Part shown: piece by piece, positions 21,664 to 49,747 of the stretch
Position numbering within the stretch: position 1 is the first letter of the stretch
How the letters are laid out: each line of letters starts with the position of its first letter
Assembly: GCA_950097015.1 (NCBI GenBank)
Contig: CATNEN010000039.1
Coordinates: forward strand, 19,840,001 to 19,904,000
Direction of reading: 5' to 3'
DNA length: 64,000 bases
Source: Macrostomum hystrix
Taxonomy: Eukaryota; Animalia; Platyhelminthes
Translations under genes and position numbers: made by a program
Notes under the pieces: model-generated
What the model saw: the letters and a program-made list of their open reading frames with translations, nothing else
Databases searched by the model: none
What the model was told of the DNA's origin: nothing

Positions 21664-21794
21664 TTAGTCACTGTGCTACTGCTTTAGAACTCTTACTACA
21701 CGTAAATTTTTACGTGATTTTTACACGTAAATTCCATACTATTATTCTAGGTGTAACTATGTATCATTGTGGGTTTCCCTGCTCCTAGTGTATA

Positions 21795-37600: not shown

Positions 37601-40600
37601 CATTTTCACAGCGGCGGCGAATAACTCGGCAGCTTGTTGCGGCGCTCGTGCAGAGCGTCGCCAGTCGAATTCAGGTCAAGGCGCCGTTTTCGCCCGTCAG
37701 AGCGTTGATGGTGGACCAGGCCACTCGACCTTTAGCGTGAGGCCCGGCGGCAGATACGGCCTTAATAGTATCGCCTACGGCGGCTTGCTGCCGCTGCACA
37801 TAAAAAGTTACCAGGAACTCCTCTGCCTCGCGTCTAGGGGCCTAACCCTGGCCAAGTAAGGCATAAGCTAGAAAACTTGCTTTAACTGGATTGGCTCTTA
37901 AGTTAGGATATGCCTTATATGTAAATCAATATATCTTTATTATATTTGCATAAAATGTAATCAGTCTACAATTTCGAATATGCTAAACTTTAATCACTAC
38001 ACAAGCAATAACAACTAGCTATTTAGTGTCTTAGTGCGGACTTGCGGTTAGCGGCGGCGTTTTTGTTTGCAAGACTGAATGAGCGAGTGTGATTTAAACT
38101 TCTGCAAAGGAACGGTGTTTGTCAATTACGAACTTAACGATTGCCGTTACCAGCCTATTTACGAAAAGCAAAGATAATCGGTAGCAACTAAAAAGATACT
38201 TTGGGATTGAGATATAGATCAAATTGGAAGCAATAAGAAGTCATTTTACTTCAAGAGAAAAACGAAACAAACCTACATTTTCTAAATTTGTAAGTAATGC
38301 AACGCTCTTAATGTTTAACCCCCACGTCACAACTATATATCCGAGACACGATTACAAGTAAACTGTCAAAAAGCCCACAATTGAATCCCAAAAATATCAA
38401 ACTTGTAATATGAGTCTTTATTACCACATATGTTCGACTACAGCGTGCCGCTGTAAAAAATGCAAAACTTTAAACGTTACTTTTAAAGGACATGAAAATT
38501 TTTCTATTGCAACAAAAACTTGGACAAACTTCTAACGTGCAGTAATGCAACATTTAAAGTTATTCACTTTTGCTATAATTTTAATGCCCGTGAAAATTTT
38601 TGAGTTTAAAGTTTCCGGTAATTTTTTTGCAGGGAAATGCGTTAAGTGGTACAGTGGTACACTAGGGACAGTAGGCAAACGGAAATTTCGTTAAATGGAA
38701 TGGTTACGGATACACAAATTGGACGTCCCCTGGCCTAGCGCCCCCTAGGCGGCCACCATTCGGGCCTGGCTGAAAATGTGGGTGAAATTCGTGATAAATT
38801 CGCTTAAAATCGACCCAAAACTTTCCCAAAGTTGACCCGACTTTCAACTGGCACAAAGACAGCAAATTTCGGTGAAAATCATACCAATATTGGTAAAAAA
38901 TTGACCCGAACTTTAAAAACGCTGGAAATCGTATCGAAATCGTTCCAACGCGGGTCTAAAAACTTGAAAAATGTTGTACTTGGTTCCCACTGGAATATCA
39001 CTACAGTAAAACCAGTCCAAATATAATCTTGCATTTCTCATTTATAAAAAATCGTACATTCCTACTCTTATTAATTGATATCTTAAAAAGAAAAAATTCT
39101 AACCCTGTCGCTCTCTACAAGTGGACTGAAAACATTGCTGGCAGATCTTTCGCCGGCCAGTCGACTATGCCCAACAGGGCGATCGTCTGGGCCTCTGCGT
39201 CACCCAGCTGGATCCGCGCCTCCTGGAGCGCGGCCTAGTCTACTCGCCCGGCTCCGTGCCGACAATTCACGCCCTAGTGCTGCCTGTGTCACCTGTGCGA
39301 CACTTCAAACTGCCAATCAGATCCAAGGCTAAGCTGCATGTCAGCCTGGGACACGACACTGCCATGGCCAGCCTGCTGCTGTTCAGATCTCCGGAACCCG
39401 ATCGGCCCCTAGCTGAGCAGTTCTGCGAATACGTTGAAGAGGCCAGCATGCGAGAGTGCCCGCCTGGCCTCCACGCTCTGTTAGAGTTTGAGAGGCCGAT
39501 TCAGGTAACGACGCGCTATCTGTTTAGCATTAATAAATTGACCTACAACTTTGGATCCTTAATTATGACTTAACACTTTCAGTAACACCTTCATTTCCGA
39601 TTAATGATCACACCTTATCAGCTAAACAAGTGTTTCTTCTTACTTTAGAGCTTACTATCACTTGGACATGCACCATATTTTCTTAATTAATTATCACACC
39701 TGATCGTTTAAACTACGCGTGTTGCTAATTATGGCGCCTTATCAGTTTGACTCGATATTTTCGTAACTAATTATCACACCTTATCAGCTTGGGCAATGCC
39801 TATTACACGTATTAATCGGGTATCACACCTAATTTCGTGTGTTTGTAATTAAAACGTCTAATCATTTTGAATTTTATTGGGCAATTTTTCCCATAATTTA
39901 TTTAACCTTTCAACTTCGGCTTTTATGCCAGTTACCATTCCAAATCAGCCTTTTATTCCTAATTAGTAGTAACCCCAGGATCAAAGGTTTGAAAAGTTTT
40001 AGTACCACCAGTTTAAAACTCCTAAAGCGCCCCTACAATGACTTATCTCGTAGGCCCCTCCAAGCGCAATCGTGATCGTCTCCAAGCTTGACGTCGATAT
40101 CAACCAGAATGTGTGCCGGATCGCCATGCACGGCCGTCCGCTTGAGGTCTTTCAGTCTGCCGACTACAAAACCACCCAGCTGCCCAGACTGCTCAAAGTC
40201 TACCGTCCGAAATGTCGGCGCGGTCGACTGGATCGAGTTAAAGATGCGTACACAGTCATCGTCACAGGCCTATTTCGAAAAGAGACAAATCTGGATGCTT
40301 TTATCGGATTGCAGGTGAGAAGTCTTTTAGATGCTTCCGATAAAGTTTCTAGGATGCGATTTTGAAGTTTCGGGGTCGAAGCTCCTAGATTCATGTGTGA
40401 GATTTCAAAGCTTCGAGTCAATATTCTAGGGGGAGGTTTCAAAGCTTCGAGTCAATATTCTAGGGGGAGATTTCAAAGCTTCGAGTCAATATTCTAGGGG
40501 GAGATTTCAAAGCTTCGAGTCAGTATTCTAGGGGGAGATTTCAAAGCTTCGAGTCAATATTCTAGGGGGAGATTTCAAAGCTTCGAGTCAATATTCTAGG

Positions 40601-41062
40601 GGGAGATTTCAAAGCTTCGAGTCAATATTCTAGGGGGAGATTTCTAAGCTTCGAGTCAATATTCTAGGGGGGAGATTTCTAAGCTTCGAGTCAATATTCT
40701 AGGGGGAGATTTCTAAGCTTCGAGTCAATATTCTAGGGGGAGATTTCAAAGCTTCGAGTCAATATTCTAGGCCCTAGGGGGAGAAAGAAGGAGCAACTTT
40801 CTCACTCTGTCTAATTACCCGCCACTAACGGCATGTGCAGGTGTCGCTATCCTCAGGCCAGCTGGGCCGCATTGAAGGCTCCTTCGGTCAGAGCGGCAAG
40901 TGCACGGTGCGCATGATGCAGCCGTTGCCGGACGAGTTCTGCCAACGCTACGGAGGCGGCAAGCGAAGTAAAGGCGCCGCCGGGCCAACGGAACCAGTTG
41001 AAATCACTCTGAACTTTAAGCGCCTATTGTTTGATCCGTTGAGAAAGATGACTCAAACTTGA
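34620..41062 (+). CDS. EEFSEC: Selenocysteine-specific elongation factor (eEFSec/SelB), 5 exons
   Basis: Exons 34620-35066, 35631-36005, 39145-39504, 40054-40314, 40841-41062. NVNIGVLGHVDSGKTSL, FDKNPQSQERGITLDLGFS, LVDCPGHASLI, NKID, DHCFGIRGQGTV, QGDRLGLCVTQ, SKLD..CRIA.HG, GLFRKET, G.IEGSFGQSGK. Confidence 0.95.
35125..35570. repeat. ~33-bp degenerate minisatellite, EEFSEC intron 1
   Basis: Unit CCCCAATTCTCCCCCATTCTGCTCCCCATATTT. Confidence 0.85.
36900..37640 (-). mobile_element. Decayed non-LTR reverse transcriptase fragment (RTE-like) in EEFSEC intron 2
   Basis: Minus-strand translation: AAKLFN..L.RL.P.LDP.LRSEQNGFR..RGT..QIL, IIEEAR..IFIDFRKAFDSV, GVL*GDTLTPFL, with stops and frameshifts. 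Confidence 0.8.
40398..40772. repeat. 34-bp minisatellite, EEFSEC intron 4
   Basis: Unit AAAGCTTCGAGTCAATATTCTAGGGGGAGATTTC. Confidence 0.95.
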
Positions 41063-41149
41063 CAGACTTGACGGATTTAAACATTTGCAAAATATAATAC
41101 TGTCAATCGCAGTTTAAGTAGTAAAATTGTCGGGCTGTCAATCTTCACA

Positions 41150-41815
41150 AATCCCTCAGGTTGAGCAGTCCATTCTCCGAAATCCTCATATTGAGCTGCC
41201 GTTTCTTCCCAATCCTCAGATTAAGCTGTCAATCATCCCAGATCCTCAGGTTAAGCAGTCAATTCTCCTAATCCTCAGGTTGAGCATCCGATTCTCCCCT
41301 ATCCTCAGGTTGAGCAGCCGATTCTCCCCTATCCTCAGGTTGAGCAACCGATTCTCCCCTATCCTCAGCTTGAGCAGCCGATTCTCCCCTATCCTCAGGT
41401 TGAGCAGCCTATTCTCCCCTATCCTCAGGTTGAGCAGCCTATTCTCCCCTATCCTCAGGTTGAGCAGCCTATTCTCCCCTATCCTCAGCTTGAGCAGCCT
41501 ATTCTCCCCTATCCTCAGCTTGAGCAGCCGATTCTCCCCTATCCTCAGCTTGAGCAGCCGATTCTCCCCTATCCTCAGCTTGAGCAGCCTATTCTCCCCT
41601 ATCCTCAGCTTGAGCAGCCGATTCTCCCCTATCCTCAGCTTGAGCAGCCTATTCTCCCCTATCCTCAGCTTGAGCAGCCTATTCTCCCCTATCCTCAGCT
41701 TGAGCAGCCTATTCTCCCTATCCTCAGGTTGAGCAGCCGATTCTCCCCTATCCTCAGCTTGAGCAGCCGATTCTCCCCTATCCTCAGGTTGAGCAGCCGA
41801 TTCTCCCCTATCCCC
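41150..41815. repeat. 30-bp minisatellite downstream of EEFSEC
   Basis: Unit TGAGCAGCCTATTCTCCCCTATCCTCAGCT. Confidence 0.95.
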
Positions 41816-42309
41816 AGTTGTAGCTGACAATATCCCTAGATAATCATTATCAGAACTCAATCGTTCCTTTGTTTTCGTTTTGCGTTCTGAATTTGCGTTC
41901 GTTTTGCGCACTTTAAGGTAGCATTTCGATTGTCCTTCCTACTCACTAAGTAGTTAAGATAGCGCGTTTCTAAAATATTTTCATAATTATGCCCGATAAC
42001 AAAATGTTTTTGCTTTCTGTCACAGTATGCACTCTTAATTTTAGTAAATAGAAAAATTTTTGAATGCTTAAACTAATTACCTTTACCGGTTATTTTACTG
42101 GAATAATATTCAAGTTACGCGCACTGAATAACTTTTTTCCCTTTTTAACAACTTTATAAGCCACTAACGAAACTATAAAGTTGATCGCTAGGATTATATA
42201 ATGTGATTATATTGATCAAAATGCACAAAAAAGCCTTTACATTATATTTTTTAATCGCTGGTGTAGGCATGGAAACTCATGGAAACATAAGATTGGCTAG
42301 TCGGTTGAC

Positions 42310-42860
42310 CAATAGAAACGAAGGATTAGCTAGGCGATATCTATTGGCTGGAAACAAAGGATAGGCTAGGCAATATCTATTGGCTGGAAACGAAGGATAG
42401 GCTAGGCAATATCTATTGGCTGGAAACGAAGGATAGGCTAGGCAATATCTATTGGCTGGAAACGAAGGATAAGCTAGGCGATATCTATTAGCTGACCAAT
42501 GGAAACGAAGGATAAGCTAGGCGATATCTATTGGCTGGAAACGAAGGATAAGCTAGGCGATATCTATTAGCTGACCAATGGAAACGAAGGATAAGCTAGG
42601 CGATATCTATTAGCTGACCAATGGAAACGAAGGATAAGCTAGGCGATATCTATTGGCTGAAAACGAAGGATAGGCTAGGCGATATCTATTGGCTGAAAAC
42701 GAAGGATAGGCTAGGCGATATCTATTAGCTGACCAATGGAAACGAAGGATAAGCTAGGCGATATCTATTAGCTGAACAATGGAAACGAAGGATATAAGCG
42801 AGGCAATTTCCATTTTCTGACCAATTGAAATGAAGGACAAGCTAGGCGATTTCTATTGGT
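42310..42860. repeat. 34-41-bp minisatellite upstream of the XPF acceptor
   Basis: Unit GGAAACGAAGGATAAGCTAGGCGATATCTATTRGCT(GACCAAT). Confidence 0.9.
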
Positions 42861-42889
42861 CTATCGAAGCACACGAAGTATAAGCCAGC

Positions 42890-42907
42890 CAAATTCTTAA
42901 ATTGCAG
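42890..42907 (+). promoter_or_regulatory. Candidate trans-splice acceptor of XPF (TTCTTAAATTGCAG)
   Basis: AG at 42906-7 is directly followed in phase 0 by TCT ACA GAC GGC TTA CTG GAG TAC GAA. An in-frame TAA lies just upstream. Confidence 0.65.
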
Positions 42908-45900
42908 TCTACAGACGGCTTACTGGAGTACGAAAGCGCGCTGTTCCTGGATCTGTTCCACCAGGACGGCCTGGCAGTTCTCGGCGCGGGACTCTGTCCG
43001 CACCGTCTGGCTGCTCAGCTAATCCGGCTCTACTCTGACCCTGCTCACCTGGTCCTGGTTGTCAACGCCAGACCTGACGAGGCCGAATTCTACGCTGATT
43101 ATATTCAGGGCGCCTGCGAAGCAGCCGGCCAGCCGCCGGTGTCGCCACCTCCTCGCGCGCTGACCTCGGAGCAGCCGCAGTCGGAGAGGCGTCGCCTATA
43201 CAACGATGGCGGCGTGTTCTTCGCCTCGTCCGCTCAGATTCTTGTTGTAGACTTCCTGAGATCGATTGTGCCAGCCGAAGCTGTGACTGGGCTCATTGTG
43301 CTTCACGCTGACGAAGTGTTGGACCTCTGCCAGGTCGGCTATAGATCTCCTATGACCCAGCTAAAAATTCCCTATGACCTAGCTATAGATCCCCTATGAC
43401 CCAGCTATAAATCCCCTTTGACCCAGCTATAAATCCCCTATGACCCAGCTATAAATCCCCTATGACCTAGCTATAGATCCCCAATGACCCAGCTATAGAT
43501 CCCCTATCACCCAGCTATAAAACCCCCATGACCTAGCTATAGATCCCCAATGACCCAGCTATAGATCCCCTATGACCCAGCTATAGATCCCTATGACCTA
43601 GCTATAGATCCCCTATGACCCAGCTATAGATCCCCTATGACCCAGCTATAAATCCCCTATGACCCAGCTATAAATCCCCTATGACCCAGCTATAAATCCC
43701 TATGACCTAGCCATAGATCCCCAATGACCCAGCTATAGATCCCCTATCACCCAGCTAAGATCCCCTATGACCTAGCTTTAGATCCCCTATGACCCAGCTA
43801 TAGATCCCCTATCACCCAGCTATAGATCCCCAATGACCCAGCTATAGATCCCCTATCACCCAGCTATAGATCCCCTATCACCCAGCTATAGATCCCCTAT
43901 GACCTAGCTTTAGATCCCCTATGACCCATATGATTCTGATCCCTCACAAATCCAGGAGGCGTTCGTGCTTCGCCTGTACCGCGAGGCGAACCCCACTGGC
44001 TTCATCAAAGCCATCACGGACAGGGCGCAGGGGCTGACGCGCGGCGGCTTCGGCATCGAGCGAATTCTACGCACCCTGTTTGTGCCCGGCTTGTTCCTGC
44101 TGCCAAGATTTCACGAGAGCGTGGCTGCCTGTATGGACGCCTGCCCGCCTCAGGTGTGATCTAGGGATGGGGAAGAAAATATGGGATTTGGTGGGGGATA
44201 TTGATTGGGATTGAGTGGGGAAAAGAGAAGATAGGATTAAGTGGGGAATAAAGAATTAGATTGGATCGAAAAAACAATATGAGGTTTGATAGGATGGATG
44301 AGGAATACTATATGAGATTGGTTGGGGAAGACAGGATGGGTTGGGATCGGAAAGTCAGGATGGGATGGGATCGGAAAGTCATGATGGGATGGGATCGGGA
44401 AGACAGGATGGAATGGGATCGGAAAGTCAGGATGGGATCTGGTAGACAGGATGGGATAGGATCGGAAAGTCAGGATGGCATGGGATCGGAAAGTCAGGAT
44501 GGGATGGGATCGGAAAGTCAGGATGGGATGGGATCGGAAAGTCAGGATGGGATGGGATTGGCGAGACAAAATTGGATGGGATCGGAAAGTCAGGATGGGA
44601 TGGAATTGGCGAGACAAAATGGAATGGGATCGGAAAGTCAGGATGGGATGGGATCGGAAAGTCAGGATGGCATGGGATCGGAAAGTCAGGATGGGATGGG
44701 ATCGGAAAGTCAGGATGGGATGGGATCGGAAAGTCAGGATGGGATGGGATCGGAAAGTCATGATGGGATGGGATCGGGAAGACAGAATGGAATGGGATCG
44801 GAAAGTCAGGATGGGATCTGGTAGACAGGATGGGATAGGATCGGAAAGTCAGGATGGGATGGGATCGGAAAGTCAGGATGGGATGGGATTGGCGAGACAA
44901 AATTGGATGGGATCGGAAAGTCAGGATGGGATGGAATTGGCGAGACAAAATGGAATGGGATCGGAAAGTCAGGATGGGATGGGATCGGAAAGTCAGGATG
45001 GCATGGGATCGGAAAGTCAGGATGGGATGGGATCGGAAAGTCAGGATGGGATGGGATCGGAAAGTCAGGATGGGATGGGATCGGAAAGTCAGGATTGGAT
45101 GGGATTGGCGAGACAAAATTGGATGGGATCGGAAAGTCAGGATGGGATGGAATTGGCGAGACAAAATGGAATGGGATCGGAAAGTCAGGATGGCATGGGA
45201 TCGGCGAGACAGAATGGGATGGGATCGGAAAGACACAATGAAATGGGATCGGGTAGACAGGATGTGATTACCGTACTGTATGGGTATGAGAGGATAGGAT
45301 AGAGAACAGAAAGGGTAATAGAAGGGGGAAGTAATATAACAAGTTTTTATCCCTACGCCCTCAAACTCAGGTAGAGGAGGTTCGCGTTCGTCTAACTGAA
45401 CCGATGCTTCGCTGCCAGTCGGCCCTGGTGGACCTGCTGAAGGCCTGCATGCAGGAGCTGTCCCGTTCAGCGCCGGTTCTAGACGCCAACGAGCTGACGG
45501 TGGAGAACGCGCTGACTCGCGGCTTCGACCAGCTGCTTCGAGCCTACACTGACCCAGTCTGGCACCGGATGAGCTACCGCAGTCGGCAGCTGGTGGCCGA
45601 CATCCGCACCCTGCGCCGCTTCCTGCTGGCTCTGACTCAGGTTGACTCAGGGATCTGACTCAGGTTGACTCCGGGATCTGACTCATTTTGCTTCAGGGAT
45701 CTGACTCAGGTTGCTTCAGGGATCTGACTCAGGTTGATTCAGGGATCTGACTCATTTTGCTTCAGGGATCTGGCTCAAGTTGCTTCAGGGATCTGGCTCA
45801 AGTTGCTTCAGGGATCTGACTCAAGTTGCTTCAGGGATCTGACTCAAGTTGACTCAGGGATCTGACTCAGGTTAACTCAGGGATCTGACTCAGTTTGACT

Positions 45901-48900
45901 CAGGTTGACTCAGGGATCTGACTCAGGTTGCTTCAGGGATCTGACTCAGGTTAACTCAGGGATCTGACTCGGGTTGACTCCGGGATCTGACTCATTTGTT
46001 TCAGGGATCTGACTCATTTGTTTCAGGGATCTGTCTCAGGTTGACTCCGGGATCTGACTCGGGTTGCTTCAGGGCTCTGACTCATTTTGCTTCAGAGCTC
46101 TGACTCATTTTGCTTCAGGGATCTGACTCATTTGCTTCAGGGATCTGACTCATTTGCTTCAGGGATCTGACTCGGGTTAACTCAGGGCTCAGAGTGTCAT
46201 GATTCTTTCATTTTGAAAAGCGTTCTCAATTGCATCGCAGGAGGACCCAGCCGCATTTCACCGTCGCGTCGCCTCGGTCATCAGCAGCGAGAAAGCATTC
46301 GGCGCCAACTCCGGCTGGCTTTTTCTGGCCGAAGCTGACCGACTCCTGTCAGCCAGCAAGGCCAGACTTGGCGGCTCAGCCACTGGTCCAGCTTCCGGAT
46401 ACGAGATTCCGCCTAAGTGGCTGTCCTGTCGAGCTATTCTGAAGGAAATTGAGCAGCAGCAAGATGAACTGCCTTCAAGGTGTGAGACTTGCTTTAAGGC
46501 ACTGTTAGTTTGATTTCTTAGAGTTCTTTGAAGTTTATTTAGTCTATAGGATTGACCCCCTCTCTCTAGTGTTGACCCCCTCTCAGTGTTGGGTTGGCCC
46601 CCTCTCAGTGTAGGATTGACCCCCTCTCTCTAGGATTGACCCCCTCTCAGTGTAGGGTTGACCCCCTCTCAGTGTAGGGTTGACCCCCTCTCAGTGTAGG
46701 ATTGACTCCCTCTCAGTGTAGGATTGACCCCCTCTCAGTGTAGGATTGACCCCCTCTCTCTAGGATTGACCCCCTCTCAGTGTAGGGTTGACCCCCTCTC
46801 AGTGTAGGATTGACCCCCTCTCTCTAGAATTGACCCCCCCTCTCTCTAGAATTGACCCCTGTCTCTCTAGAATTGACCCCGTCTTCTGTAAAATTGACCG
46901 CAACGCTGTTCGGTTGACTCCATCTAATTTATTTCCTAATCAATTTTCTTAGGAAAATTTATTTATTTATTATTGACTTGCAATTGTAGCGGCTCAAATT
47001 CTGAGCAGCCGAACAGGCGTCAGCTCCGCACTCTGGTCCTGGTTCACGACGCAGCCACTCAGCGTCAATTATTTGCCTACCTAACTGTAGGCGCCGAGGC
47101 AGCGTTTGCCGCCGACAAGCAAAACAATTCCGATAATTCCGATTCGGAATCTGATGTCGGCGTTAAAACTGCCGCCGCCAACAACAACAACAACAAAAAG
47201 AAGAAGATTGCAAACAGGCAACGGAAACAAAATAAAAAGCCGACCGCACTAACACTCACCCAGATGCTGCGACCGCAGCAGGCGGAAGACCCCAAAGCTG
47301 AAACCGACGATGACGCTGATGAAGCAATTGACGAATCTAAAATCGACGAAATTGATTTAAAAAGACGATTCCCAAGTATTCGCTTATTCGAAGTCAATAA
47401 TAATACGAGCGATACTGTTTGTCGGCATGCAATATTTGCGATTAAAAACTATTTCGCTGGCGTCGGTCAAACCCGACGTCAGGCGTCGTCGATCGGACAT
47501 CAGCAGGCTTTGCCGCAGCTGCTAGACTGTTGGCAGCCGCATTGTGTACTGCTGTACGATGCAGATTCGACCAGCGTACGCCAGCTGGAGGTGTACAGTC
47601 TATGTCGAAGGCGTGTTAATAATCAACAGCCGAGTCCGCTGCTCATCTATTTCTTTGTCTACGAGAGTAGCGTAGAGGAGCAGCGCTACCTGACCCAGCT
47701 GCGCAAGGAGAAAGACGCTTTCGAATTTCTTATACGCGAACGCAGCGTCGCCGTGGTTACCAGCGAACCGGTTGTCAAGGGCGATTTAGCGCCGGCTGAA
47801 GAGCTAGAACCTGACATTGGTGGCATTGGAACTGTACCTGCCAGCCAAACTGCCGAGCAGCATCAGGTGTGATTGGATGAAGACTGGGATAAAACTCAGG
47901 GAAGAATATGATAGAACTCAGTTGGATAGAATATGATAGAACTCAGTTGAATAGAGTAGGATAGAACTCAGTTGAATAGAGTAGGATAGAACTCAGTTGG
48001 ATAGAATATGATAGAACTCAGTTGAATAGAGTAGGATAGAACTCAGTTGGATAGAATATGATAGAACTCAGTAGTATAGAACAGGATAGAACTCAGTAGG
48101 ATAGAACAGGATAAAATGCGGTTTCAGTTCGGAATCATATCTCCATCGTTGTCATCATTGTCGATCTTCTCGCCCCGTCGCCGTTCAGGTGATCGTAGAC
48201 GTTCGCGAGTTTCGCAGCGAGCTGCCATGCCTACTGCACAGGCGAGGCATCACCATCTTGCCTGTGACCATCGATATTGGCGACTACGTTCTCACTCCTG
48301 AGATCTGCGTTGAGCGAAAGTCTGTCAGCGATTTGATTGGCTCGTTAAACAGCGGACGGCTCTATAATCAGGTTAGGAAAATTTGATTCGTAACTGCTAA
48401 TGATCCTATACCAACTACCATCTTTGATCATCAATATACCCCCCTATAGTCTATGATCCTTTTCATTCGTCTTTCGACACTTCACATGATCAATGACTCT
48501 ATTTTATCATAATGACCCTCTTCTCTGATCAATGACCCTCTTCTACAATCAATGACCCTCTCTATGATCAATGACCCTCTTCTATGATCAATGACCCTCT
48601 TCTATGATCAATGACCCTCTTTTACAATCACTGACCCTTTTCTACAATCAATGATCCTCTTCTACAATCAATGACCCTCTTCTATGATCAATGACCCTCT
48701 TCTATGATCAATGACCCTCTTCTATGATCAATGACGCTCTCTATGATCAATAACCCTCTTCTACAATCAATGACCCTCTTCTATGATCAATGACCCTCTC
48801 TATGATCAATAACCCTCTTCTACAATCAATGACCCTCTTCTATGATCAATGACCCTCTCTATGATCAATGACCCTCTTCTATGATCAATGACCCCCTTCT

Positions 48901-49747
48901 ATGATCAATGACCCTCTTCTATGATCGATGACCATCTTCCATCATAAATGCCTTTTTTCTGCAATTGATGAGCATCTTCCATGATGAATGACCCTCTTTC
49001 GTGACCAGTCAATGACCCTCATGATCAATGACCCGCTCTCGTCATCGCTGAAGTCATTCGTGGCTCTCGCACCCTGCTTGCCAGGTCGTGAACATGACCC
49101 AGCACTATCGCACGCCGGCACTTCTCATTGAATTCGACGCAGAGCGCAGCGGTTTCGCGCTCTTTCACGGCCGCGCCGCCATGAGCTCCGAGCTGAACTC
49201 GTCCGACGTGATTTCCCGCCTCAGCCTGCTGACTCTGCACTTTCCACAGCTGCGCATTCTGTGGAGCCCGGCGCCTCACGCAACCGCCGAACTGTTCCAC
49301 GACCTCAAACGCGGCCGACCCCAGCCGCAGCTCCAACTGCTGCCGTCTGTCACCGCCGTCGTAGCTAACGACGCTGACACGGGCGTCGCTTTAGAAACAT
49401 TCGACGAACAGACTTCGTTGTCGTCGTCGGCGACCTCGTCGGCCGCAATGCGCCATGTGGCTCGCTCGATGCTGCTGAGAATGCCTGGCGTCGGGCATCG
49501 CAATGTCCGCTCGCTTGTCAAGGCGGCCGGTGGCAGCTTCGCCGGACTCTGCCAACTCGGCGTTGGCGAACTGCGCGAAGCTCTCGGCCAACGCGAGGCC
49601 GCTGAACGGCTACACGAGTTTCTTCACACTGACGGGCGCCGGGTCCAGCAACAGCAGCAGCAGCAGCCTAGCAGGGTAGGCACCGCATCGCGCAGACCCA
49701 ACATTCAACTGGCTACCAAACTGCCCACTGGATACAAGAAGAAGTGA
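42908..49747 (+). CDS. ERCC4: DNA repair endonuclease XPF, 7 exons; no genomic start codon in exon 1
   Basis: Exons 42908-43333, 43956-44153, 45371-45640, 46241-46479, 46990-47866, 48189-48371, 49085-49747. Motifs [67 protein letters not shown], nuclease [37 protein letters not shown], and HhH (MPGVG). Confidence 0.95.
43338..43930. repeat. 22-bp minisatellite, XPF intron 1
   Basis: Unit GACCCAGCTATAGATCCCCTAT. Confidence 0.93.
44325..45260. repeat. 24-bp minisatellite, XPF intron 2
   Basis: Unit GGGATCGGAAAGTCAGGATGGGAT. Confidence 0.95.
45631..46190. repeat. 23-bp minisatellite, XPF intron 3, starting inside exon 3
   Basis: Unit CTGACTCAGGTTGACTCAGGGAT. Confidence 0.93.
46548..46900. repeat. 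~22-bp minisatellite, XPF intron 4
   Basis: Unit GATTGACCCCCTCTCAGTGTAG. Confidence 0.9.
47900..48115. repeat. ~25-bp minisatellite, XPF intron 5
   Basis: Unit GATAGAACTCAGTTGAATAGAGTAG. Confidence 0.9.
48490..49035. repeat. 20-bp minisatellite, XPF intron 6
   Basis: Unit TCAATGACCCTCTTCTATGA. Confidence 0.92.

Follow-up and report, generated by a model that had tools for sequence, protein, structure and literature searches.

Spliced leaders (SLs) of flatworms end in AUG, and this triplet sometimes serves as the initiator codon of the mRNA to which it is joined (Wiberg et al. 2023). In Schistosoma mansoni, according to the account given in PMC9851317, the 3'-terminal AUG of the leader is used as initiator; 28% of trans-spliced transcripts had it in frame, and more than 40 cDNAs depended on it (Cheng et al. 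2006, J Biol Chem 281:733, via PMC9851317). Here, we examine a window of 64,000 nt from the genome of the flatworm Macrostomum hystrix (GCA_950097015.1, contig CATNEN010000039.1, positions 19,840,001 to 19,904,000 of the forward strand), in which the gene for the DNA-repair nuclease XPF (ERCC4) carries no start codon at its conserved N-terminus. The window is the whole stretch of DNA analyzed, and positions given without a contig name are counted from its first letter. We propose that the missing codon is probably supplied by the AUG of the trans-spliced leader.

The likeness to S. mansoni, as that work is related in PMC9851317, is that a leader ending in AUG and in frame with a startless reading frame would provide Met1. 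The two cases differ in species and gene, and also in their evidence, as the join and its translation were experimental in S. mansoni and are deduced here from genomic sequence. The SL2 operons of nematodes offer a second comparison, as their downstream genes also acquire a cap and a 5' end by leader trans-splicing. However, the leaders of nematodes lack a terminal AUG and normally supply no start codon, and the spacer of about 100 nt in those operons contrasts with 1.8 kb, mostly tandem repeat, in M. hystrix. Among XPF proteins, the human one (6SXA chain F) shares with that of M. hystrix the helicase-like domain, aligned from LLEYE on, and the ERCC4 nuclease motif. The human gene has its own AUG 11-14 residues ahead of LLEYE, and humans have no trans-splicing. 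The XPF model of Schistosoma spindale (P0022, MYELLEYE) is annotated with a Met start, unlike the M. hystrix gene.

Results

The plus strand of the window carries an intact XPF/ERCC4 gene (42908-49747) of seven exons and 951 codons with one stop, which is terminal, and this gene has no encoded start codon at its conserved N-terminus. Exon boundaries were taken from tblastn with full-length homologues and then from reading of the splice boundaries (Table 1); homology searches were run for each exon, and the seven exons were joined solely to count stops and composition. Exon 1 begins TCT ACA GAC GGC TTA CTG GAG TAC GAA (STDGLLEYE), ends in CAG^GT at 43333/43334 (^ marks a splice boundary), and is present as a single copy in the 220-Mb genome. 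It matches residues 15-144 of human XPF (PDB 6SXA chain F, 6sxa_F; phmmer E 3.2e-21), with LLEYE placed on LLEYE, and has 464 homologues at E <= 0.001. The GDXn-ERKX3D nuclease motif of XPF/ERCC4 is present in exon 6, which is 75% identical to the homologue P0004, and exon 7 aligns to the C-terminus of P0004, where the ERCC1-pairing helix-hairpin-helix would be expected. As XPF is intact, with a single terminal stop and the ERCC4 nuclease motif, a start codon is required.

None is found where it would be expected. The codons between the in-frame TAA and the exon read ASQILKLQ, with no ATG among them and only a TTG at 42902, and the first Met of the seven-exon model is codon 202, in exon 2 (...AACMDAC), with none in the preceding 201 codons. 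A sequence-only reading of this DNA had pointed to STDGLLEYE opening right after TTGCAG at 42908 in phase 0, to an in-frame TAA closely upstream, to a first in-frame Met about 200 codons in (the ACM of exon 2), and to a resemblance of the exon 1 start to the N-terminus of human XPF; the sequence, its translation, and the phmmer alignment bear out all four. Translation could in principle proceed with no AUG supplied at all. It would then begin either at a near-cognate codon of an unspliced 5' region, for which TTG at 42902 and ATT at 42893 are the candidates, or at Met202, with a truncated protein as the product. Both near-cognate codons do lie in frame 3' of the TAA, and Met202 is present, but non-AUG starts are inefficient, and a start at Met202 would delete the helicase-like N-terminal lobe that aligns to human XPF 15-144 and is 95% conserved with Macrostomum lignano. 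We regard either start as very improbable.

Directly before exon 1 lies TTGCAG, a putative trans-splice acceptor. It fits [T/C]TNCAG, which is the top motif at 21,754 trans-splice acceptors of M. lignano (PMC8629364). By chance, about 0.02 in-phase occurrences of [T/C]TNCAG would be expected in the ~36 positions from the stop to LLEYE, taking base frequencies as uniform. The leader itself is also in evidence. The published 35-nt leader of M. lignano (PMC8629364) is found unchanged in the SL RNA genes of M. hystrix, which read CGGTCTCTTACTGCGAAGACTCAATTTATTGCATG^GTAAGAC, with the exon end ...TTGCATG directly before the GT donor. These genes are laid out as CGGTCTCTTACTGCGAAGACTCAATTTATTGCATG^GTAAGACACC..., then an Sm-like AUAUUUUUAG, and then a terminal hairpin; the 109-nt SL RNA has three predicted hairpins (-32.6 kcal/mol, z = -3.6), and leader-like sites in the genome number at least 112. 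An RNA-derived assembly of the M. hystrix leader ends ...TTATTGC ATG (Wiberg et al. 2023). The earlier statement that the flatworm leader ends in AUG is thus upheld in this species by both the SL RNA genes and the published leader.

In the mechanism that we propose, XPF would follow eEFSec in a shared transcription unit, or would at least possess a long outron, and its pre-mRNA would be trans-spliced to the Macrostomum leader at TTGCAG^ (42907/42908). The expected junction would be ...CAATTTATTGCATG followed by TCTACAGACGGC from 42908. The mature mRNA would then read leader-AUG-UCU-ACA-GAC..., in which AUG would be the last three bases of the leader, and translation would begin at this AUG to yield a 952-residue XPF starting MSTDGLL. 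When the leader ATG is set before TCT ACA GAC..., it is in frame with XPF with no intervening stop, and the first Leu of LLEYE becomes residue 6. The equivalent Leu lies within the first 10 residues in 23 of 50 phmmer matches (long homologues starting with M, of which a few proteins were matched twice), and several XPF homologues start MLEYE, MLEFE, or MLDYE. Judged by these homologues, nothing about the predicted start of the protein is unusual for XPF.

The SL RNA genes of the M. hystrix genome form two families, and both leaders end in ATG. The canonical leader is carried on contigs C15, C17, and C42 (G000), with a spacing of ~11.6 kb. The variant leader belongs to a dense ~927-bp array on the same contig as the window (C39:12667890-12742923), reads ...GACTCTCTTTTTTGCATG^GT, and ends GCATG^GT. 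Twelve leader copies without a following GT were inspected as fossils of leader-AUG mRNAs; their frames extend just 1-43 codons from the ATG and are uninformative. None of the dispersed copies without GTAAG after them (e.g., G000:C7:8556410, C24:365104, and C38:27887531) opens a long frame, and four dispersed copies agree in the sequence that follows the ATG (MASTRFAS or similar). No processed retrocopy of leader plus XPF was found in the genome.

Upstream of XPF on the same strand lies the gene for the selenocysteine-specific elongation factor eEFSec, whose last exon carries the PF21131 C-terminal RIFT domain (E 5.5e-10) and ends ...RKMTQT before the stop TGA at 41060-41062. This order, eEFSec followed by XPF on one strand, is common to M. 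hystrix (39328-49747) and M. lignano. In M. lignano, genes on the same strand are assigned to operons if they lie <1 kb apart after repeats are subtracted, and repeats are noted to inflate operon spacers (Ustyantsev and Berezikov, PMC8629364). When the 1,246 nt of tandem arrays are subtracted from the 1,845-nt spacer of M. hystrix, 599 nt (~1/3) of non-repeat sequence separates eEFSec from XPF, which falls inside this repeat-adjusted 1-kb limit for Macrostomum operons. The array at 42315-42896 and the AT-rich spacer have no other copy in the genome, and no Rfam families were found in 40800-43400.

The orthologue in M. lignano shares several of these features. Its ML2 model P0003 (UniProt A0A1I8FQ47) is 95% identical to M. 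hystrix XPF over the first 58 residues. The RNA-based Mlig_3_7 annotation places eEFSec (Mlig023716g1/g4) upstream of XPF (Mlig023716g3/g5) on the same two contigs (P0154/P0152 and P0155/P0157), and a common Mlig prefix denotes genes that were cut from one RNA-seq-assembled transcriptional unit at trans-splice and poly(A) signals (Wudarski et al. 2017). The indication of co-transcription comes from M. lignano only, as the prefix Mlig023716 common to both genes on two contigs. Both XPF coding sequences (CDSs; BOX15_Mlig023716g3/g5; PAA93090.1 and PAA81251.1; P0152 and P0157) are flagged as 5'-partial and are without Met. The supplementary tables of Macrostomum papers, when searched, held no entry for Mlig023716, ERCC4, or XPF.

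Older ML2 models of M. lignano keep STDGLLDYE with no Met ahead of it and are fused to eEFSec instead; five such UniProt models (P0002, P0003, P0007, P0153, and P0161) join the two genes. If M. hystrix did the same, a fusion protein would arise by cis-splicing from a donor in the last eEFSec exon (CCA^GTTGAA, 40996/40997, phase 0) to 42908. P0161, P0002, P0007, and P0153 indeed run eEFSec in frame into STDGLL, and an in-phase GT is available in M. hystrix at 40996/40997. However, the junctions of the models disagree (EPVE^, EPVAS^, and KRLL^), a pattern that gene predictors working on an indel-error-rich assembly would be expected to produce as artefacts, the later RNA-based annotation separates eEFSec from XPF, and no fusion occurs in any other organism among the searched homologues. 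A fusion in M. hystrix is hardly credible, and that in the older M. lignano models is apparently an artefact.

Table 1. Coordinates of the XPF gene, its 5' region, and the upstream eEFSec gene in the M. hystrix window
Feature	Position	Strand or location	Evidence and remarks
XPF exon 1	42908-43333	+	142 codons, no Met, opens STDGLLEYE; phmmer vs human XPF
XPF exon 2	43956-44153	+	Contains codon 202 as first in-frame Met; P0004 by tblastn, then boundary reading
XPF exon 3	45371-45640	+	tblastn and boundary reading
XPF exon 4	46241-46479	+	Ends in phase 2; tblastn and boundary reading
XPF exon 5	46990-47866	+	tblastn and boundary reading
XPF exon 6	48189-48371	+	First half of ERCC4 nuclease domain, IGDYVL...VERKSVSDL; Pfam PF02732, E 1.2e-16
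XPF exon 7	49085-49747	+	Remaining nuclease domain and C-terminal part; stop TGA 49745-49747
In-frame stop TAA	42881-42883	+	Nine codons 5' of exon 1; translation of 42881-43333
TTGCAG, putative trans-splice acceptor	42902-42907	+	Phase 0; fits [T/C]TNCAG
CTACAG^, second motif-like acceptor	42909-42914	+	Putative; read from sequence
Rival cis exon	42221-42262	+	MHKKAFTLYFLIAG^GTAGGC, ATG and 13 codons, GC 0.29; log-odds -2.9 bits vs +15.2 bits for first 14 exon 1 codons
Rival cis exon	42830-42877	+	16 codons from an ATG in the decayed last repeat unit; followed by GTATAA at 42878; 30-nt intron needed
eEFSec last exons	39328-39481, 40054-40197, 40856-41062	+	Pfam PF21208 and PF21131; tblastn of M. 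lignano P0002
Intercistronic spacer (putative outron)	41063-42907	+	1,845 nt; Tandem Repeats Finder
Tandem array, 30-nt unit	41154-41817	Spacer	Tandem Repeats Finder
Tandem array, 36/43-nt unit	42315-42896	Spacer	Tandem Repeats Finder

A start codon could also be provided by a conventional upstream exon, and in-phase ATG...GT frames were enumerated from the stop of eEFSec up to the acceptor at 42908. The spacer holds only six such mini-exons (41989-42018, 41989-42024, 42004-42018, 42004-42024, 42221-42262, and 42830-42877). All six have negative coding log-odds, from -0.2 to -1.0 bits/codon as against +1.0 to +1.1 for exon 1 over its first 14-16 codons, on a scale that is slightly circular, being trained on the XPF gene and the spacer themselves. 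A GT[G/A]AG donor is absent from all six. The six donors of XPF itself are, in order, GTCGGC, GTGTGA, GTTGAC, GTGTGA, GTGTGA, and GTTAGG; all are non-consensus and none is GT[G/A]AG, and donor strength therefore decides nothing. The array at 42315-42877 contains a single GT and thus leaves almost no space for hidden exons. No ATG^GTRAG mini-exon exists in the whole window, and the ...TCTACT^GTAAGTA cassette of the window has no copy near XPF.

The sequence-only reading had named a 14-codon alternative exon at 42221-42262 in the right phase, and this exon does exist in phase 0. The weakness that it noted in the GTAGGC donor is no ground for discarding the exon, as the six XPF donors are equally non-consensus. 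Its list of candidates was correct as far as 42221-42262 is concerned and overlooked both the in-phase ATG exon at 42830 and the acceptor CTACAG^ at 42909-42914.

If XPF had its own promoter, a short cis-spliced first exon could carry the ATG, and the first five mini-exons listed above would be the candidates. Such exons are available in phase 0, the true XPF donors are no closer to consensus than theirs, and the AT-rich unique spacer includes a TATATAA at ~42196. Nevertheless, we consider a cis-spliced first exon unlikely. In addition to their non-coding-like codon usage and the lack of a GT[G/A]AG donor in any of them, the candidates have a GC content of 0.29-0.36 vs 0.58 for coding sequence, no M. 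lignano model has a Met-bearing extension, and XPF homologues seldom need more than a few residues ahead of LLEYE.

The sixth mini-exon would require a different arrangement, in which translation starts from the ATG at 42830 and the TAA is spliced out with a mini-intron of 30 nt, GTATAAG...TTGCAG (42878-42907). The ATG and the acceptor agree in phase with GTATAAG, which resembles a donor, and some parasitic flatworms do have very short introns. Yet this ATG belongs to a tandem repeat specific to the locus, of which it occupies the decayed last unit, the codon log-odds of 42830-42877 are negative, and an intron of 30 nt departs from the 322-1,217 nt observed for XPF introns and would leave too little space for the usual placement of a branch point. 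A matching Met exon is likewise absent from P0003, the read-through model of M. lignano, and we give this arrangement next to no credence.

Initiation at the leader AUG has several points to answer, which weigh against it alongside the circularity of the codon scale. The second motif-like acceptor, CTACAG^, lies 7 nt downstream of the first and would put the leader ATG out of frame, in a short frame that runs to a TAA. The STD that precedes LLEYE is kept in M. lignano (STDGLLDYE), and the first acceptor (42907/42908) is argued to be the productive one because of this conservation. The RNA-based XPF CDSs of M. lignano begin 11 codons into the exon, at LFLDLF; trimming or an incomplete 5' end of the transcript model may account for this late start. 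As XPF uses non-consensus donors throughout, weak-looking upstream donors stay available when judged on sequence alone. Homologue searches (lengths 78-248, 150-478, and 559-1780 aa) returned no RNA-derived M. hystrix XPF protein, only M. lignano models.

The support for leader-donated initiation is circumstantial. From the gene structure, phase, leader, acceptor motif, and gene order, we infer that trans-splicing would take place at 42907/42908 and that translation would start at the leader AUG. The earlier proposal that this AUG initiates XPF gains support from the end of the leader, the phase-0 acceptor motif, the typical N-terminus, the operon-like position, and the non-coding-like character of the rival exons.

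Tandem arrays with distinct 22-36-nt units fill most of several XPF and eEFSec introns and of the intergenic spacer (43338-43928, 44328-45268, 45631-46187, 40399-40771, and 41154-41817), often within 4-30 nt of splice sites. The array of intron 3 (region 45631-46240) begins within exon 3 and duplicates the last bases and the donor of that exon. CAG^GTTGA occurs five times: in addition to the real site (45638), there are four decoys, and use of a decoy would shift the frame (23-nt unit). In the array that ends 11 nt 5' of the XPF acceptor, nearly every unit contains a CCAAT box, and 15 CCAAT (6 on the plus and 9 on the minus strand) are found in the 611 nt of 42290-42900 vs 2.6 per kb across the window. 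This CCAAT-rich array might provide an internal promoter, or it might be mere satellite.

Discussion

The XPF gene of M. hystrix is probably an unpublished but unsurprising instance of a known flatworm mechanism, and no new mechanism is involved. Tentatively, we suggest a further possibility: eEFSec and XPF may form a conserved operon in which XPF, the downstream gene, already relied wholly on the leader AUG before the lineages of M. hystrix and M. lignano split, and has done so ever since.

The main value of the finding lies in annotation. Gene finders that require a genomic ATG will truncate such a gene, fuse it with its neighbor, or mark it as partial, and errors of this kind befell the XPF orthologue of M. 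lignano. The pairing of eEFSec and XPF is documented here as conserved between two Macrostomum species, which is a mildly interesting addition. A core DNA-repair gene would also join those flatworm genes whose translation requires trans-splicing. If the proposed mechanism is true, the output of a core DNA-repair nuclease would be tied to the efficiency of trans-splicing and to the expression of a selenoprotein translation factor.

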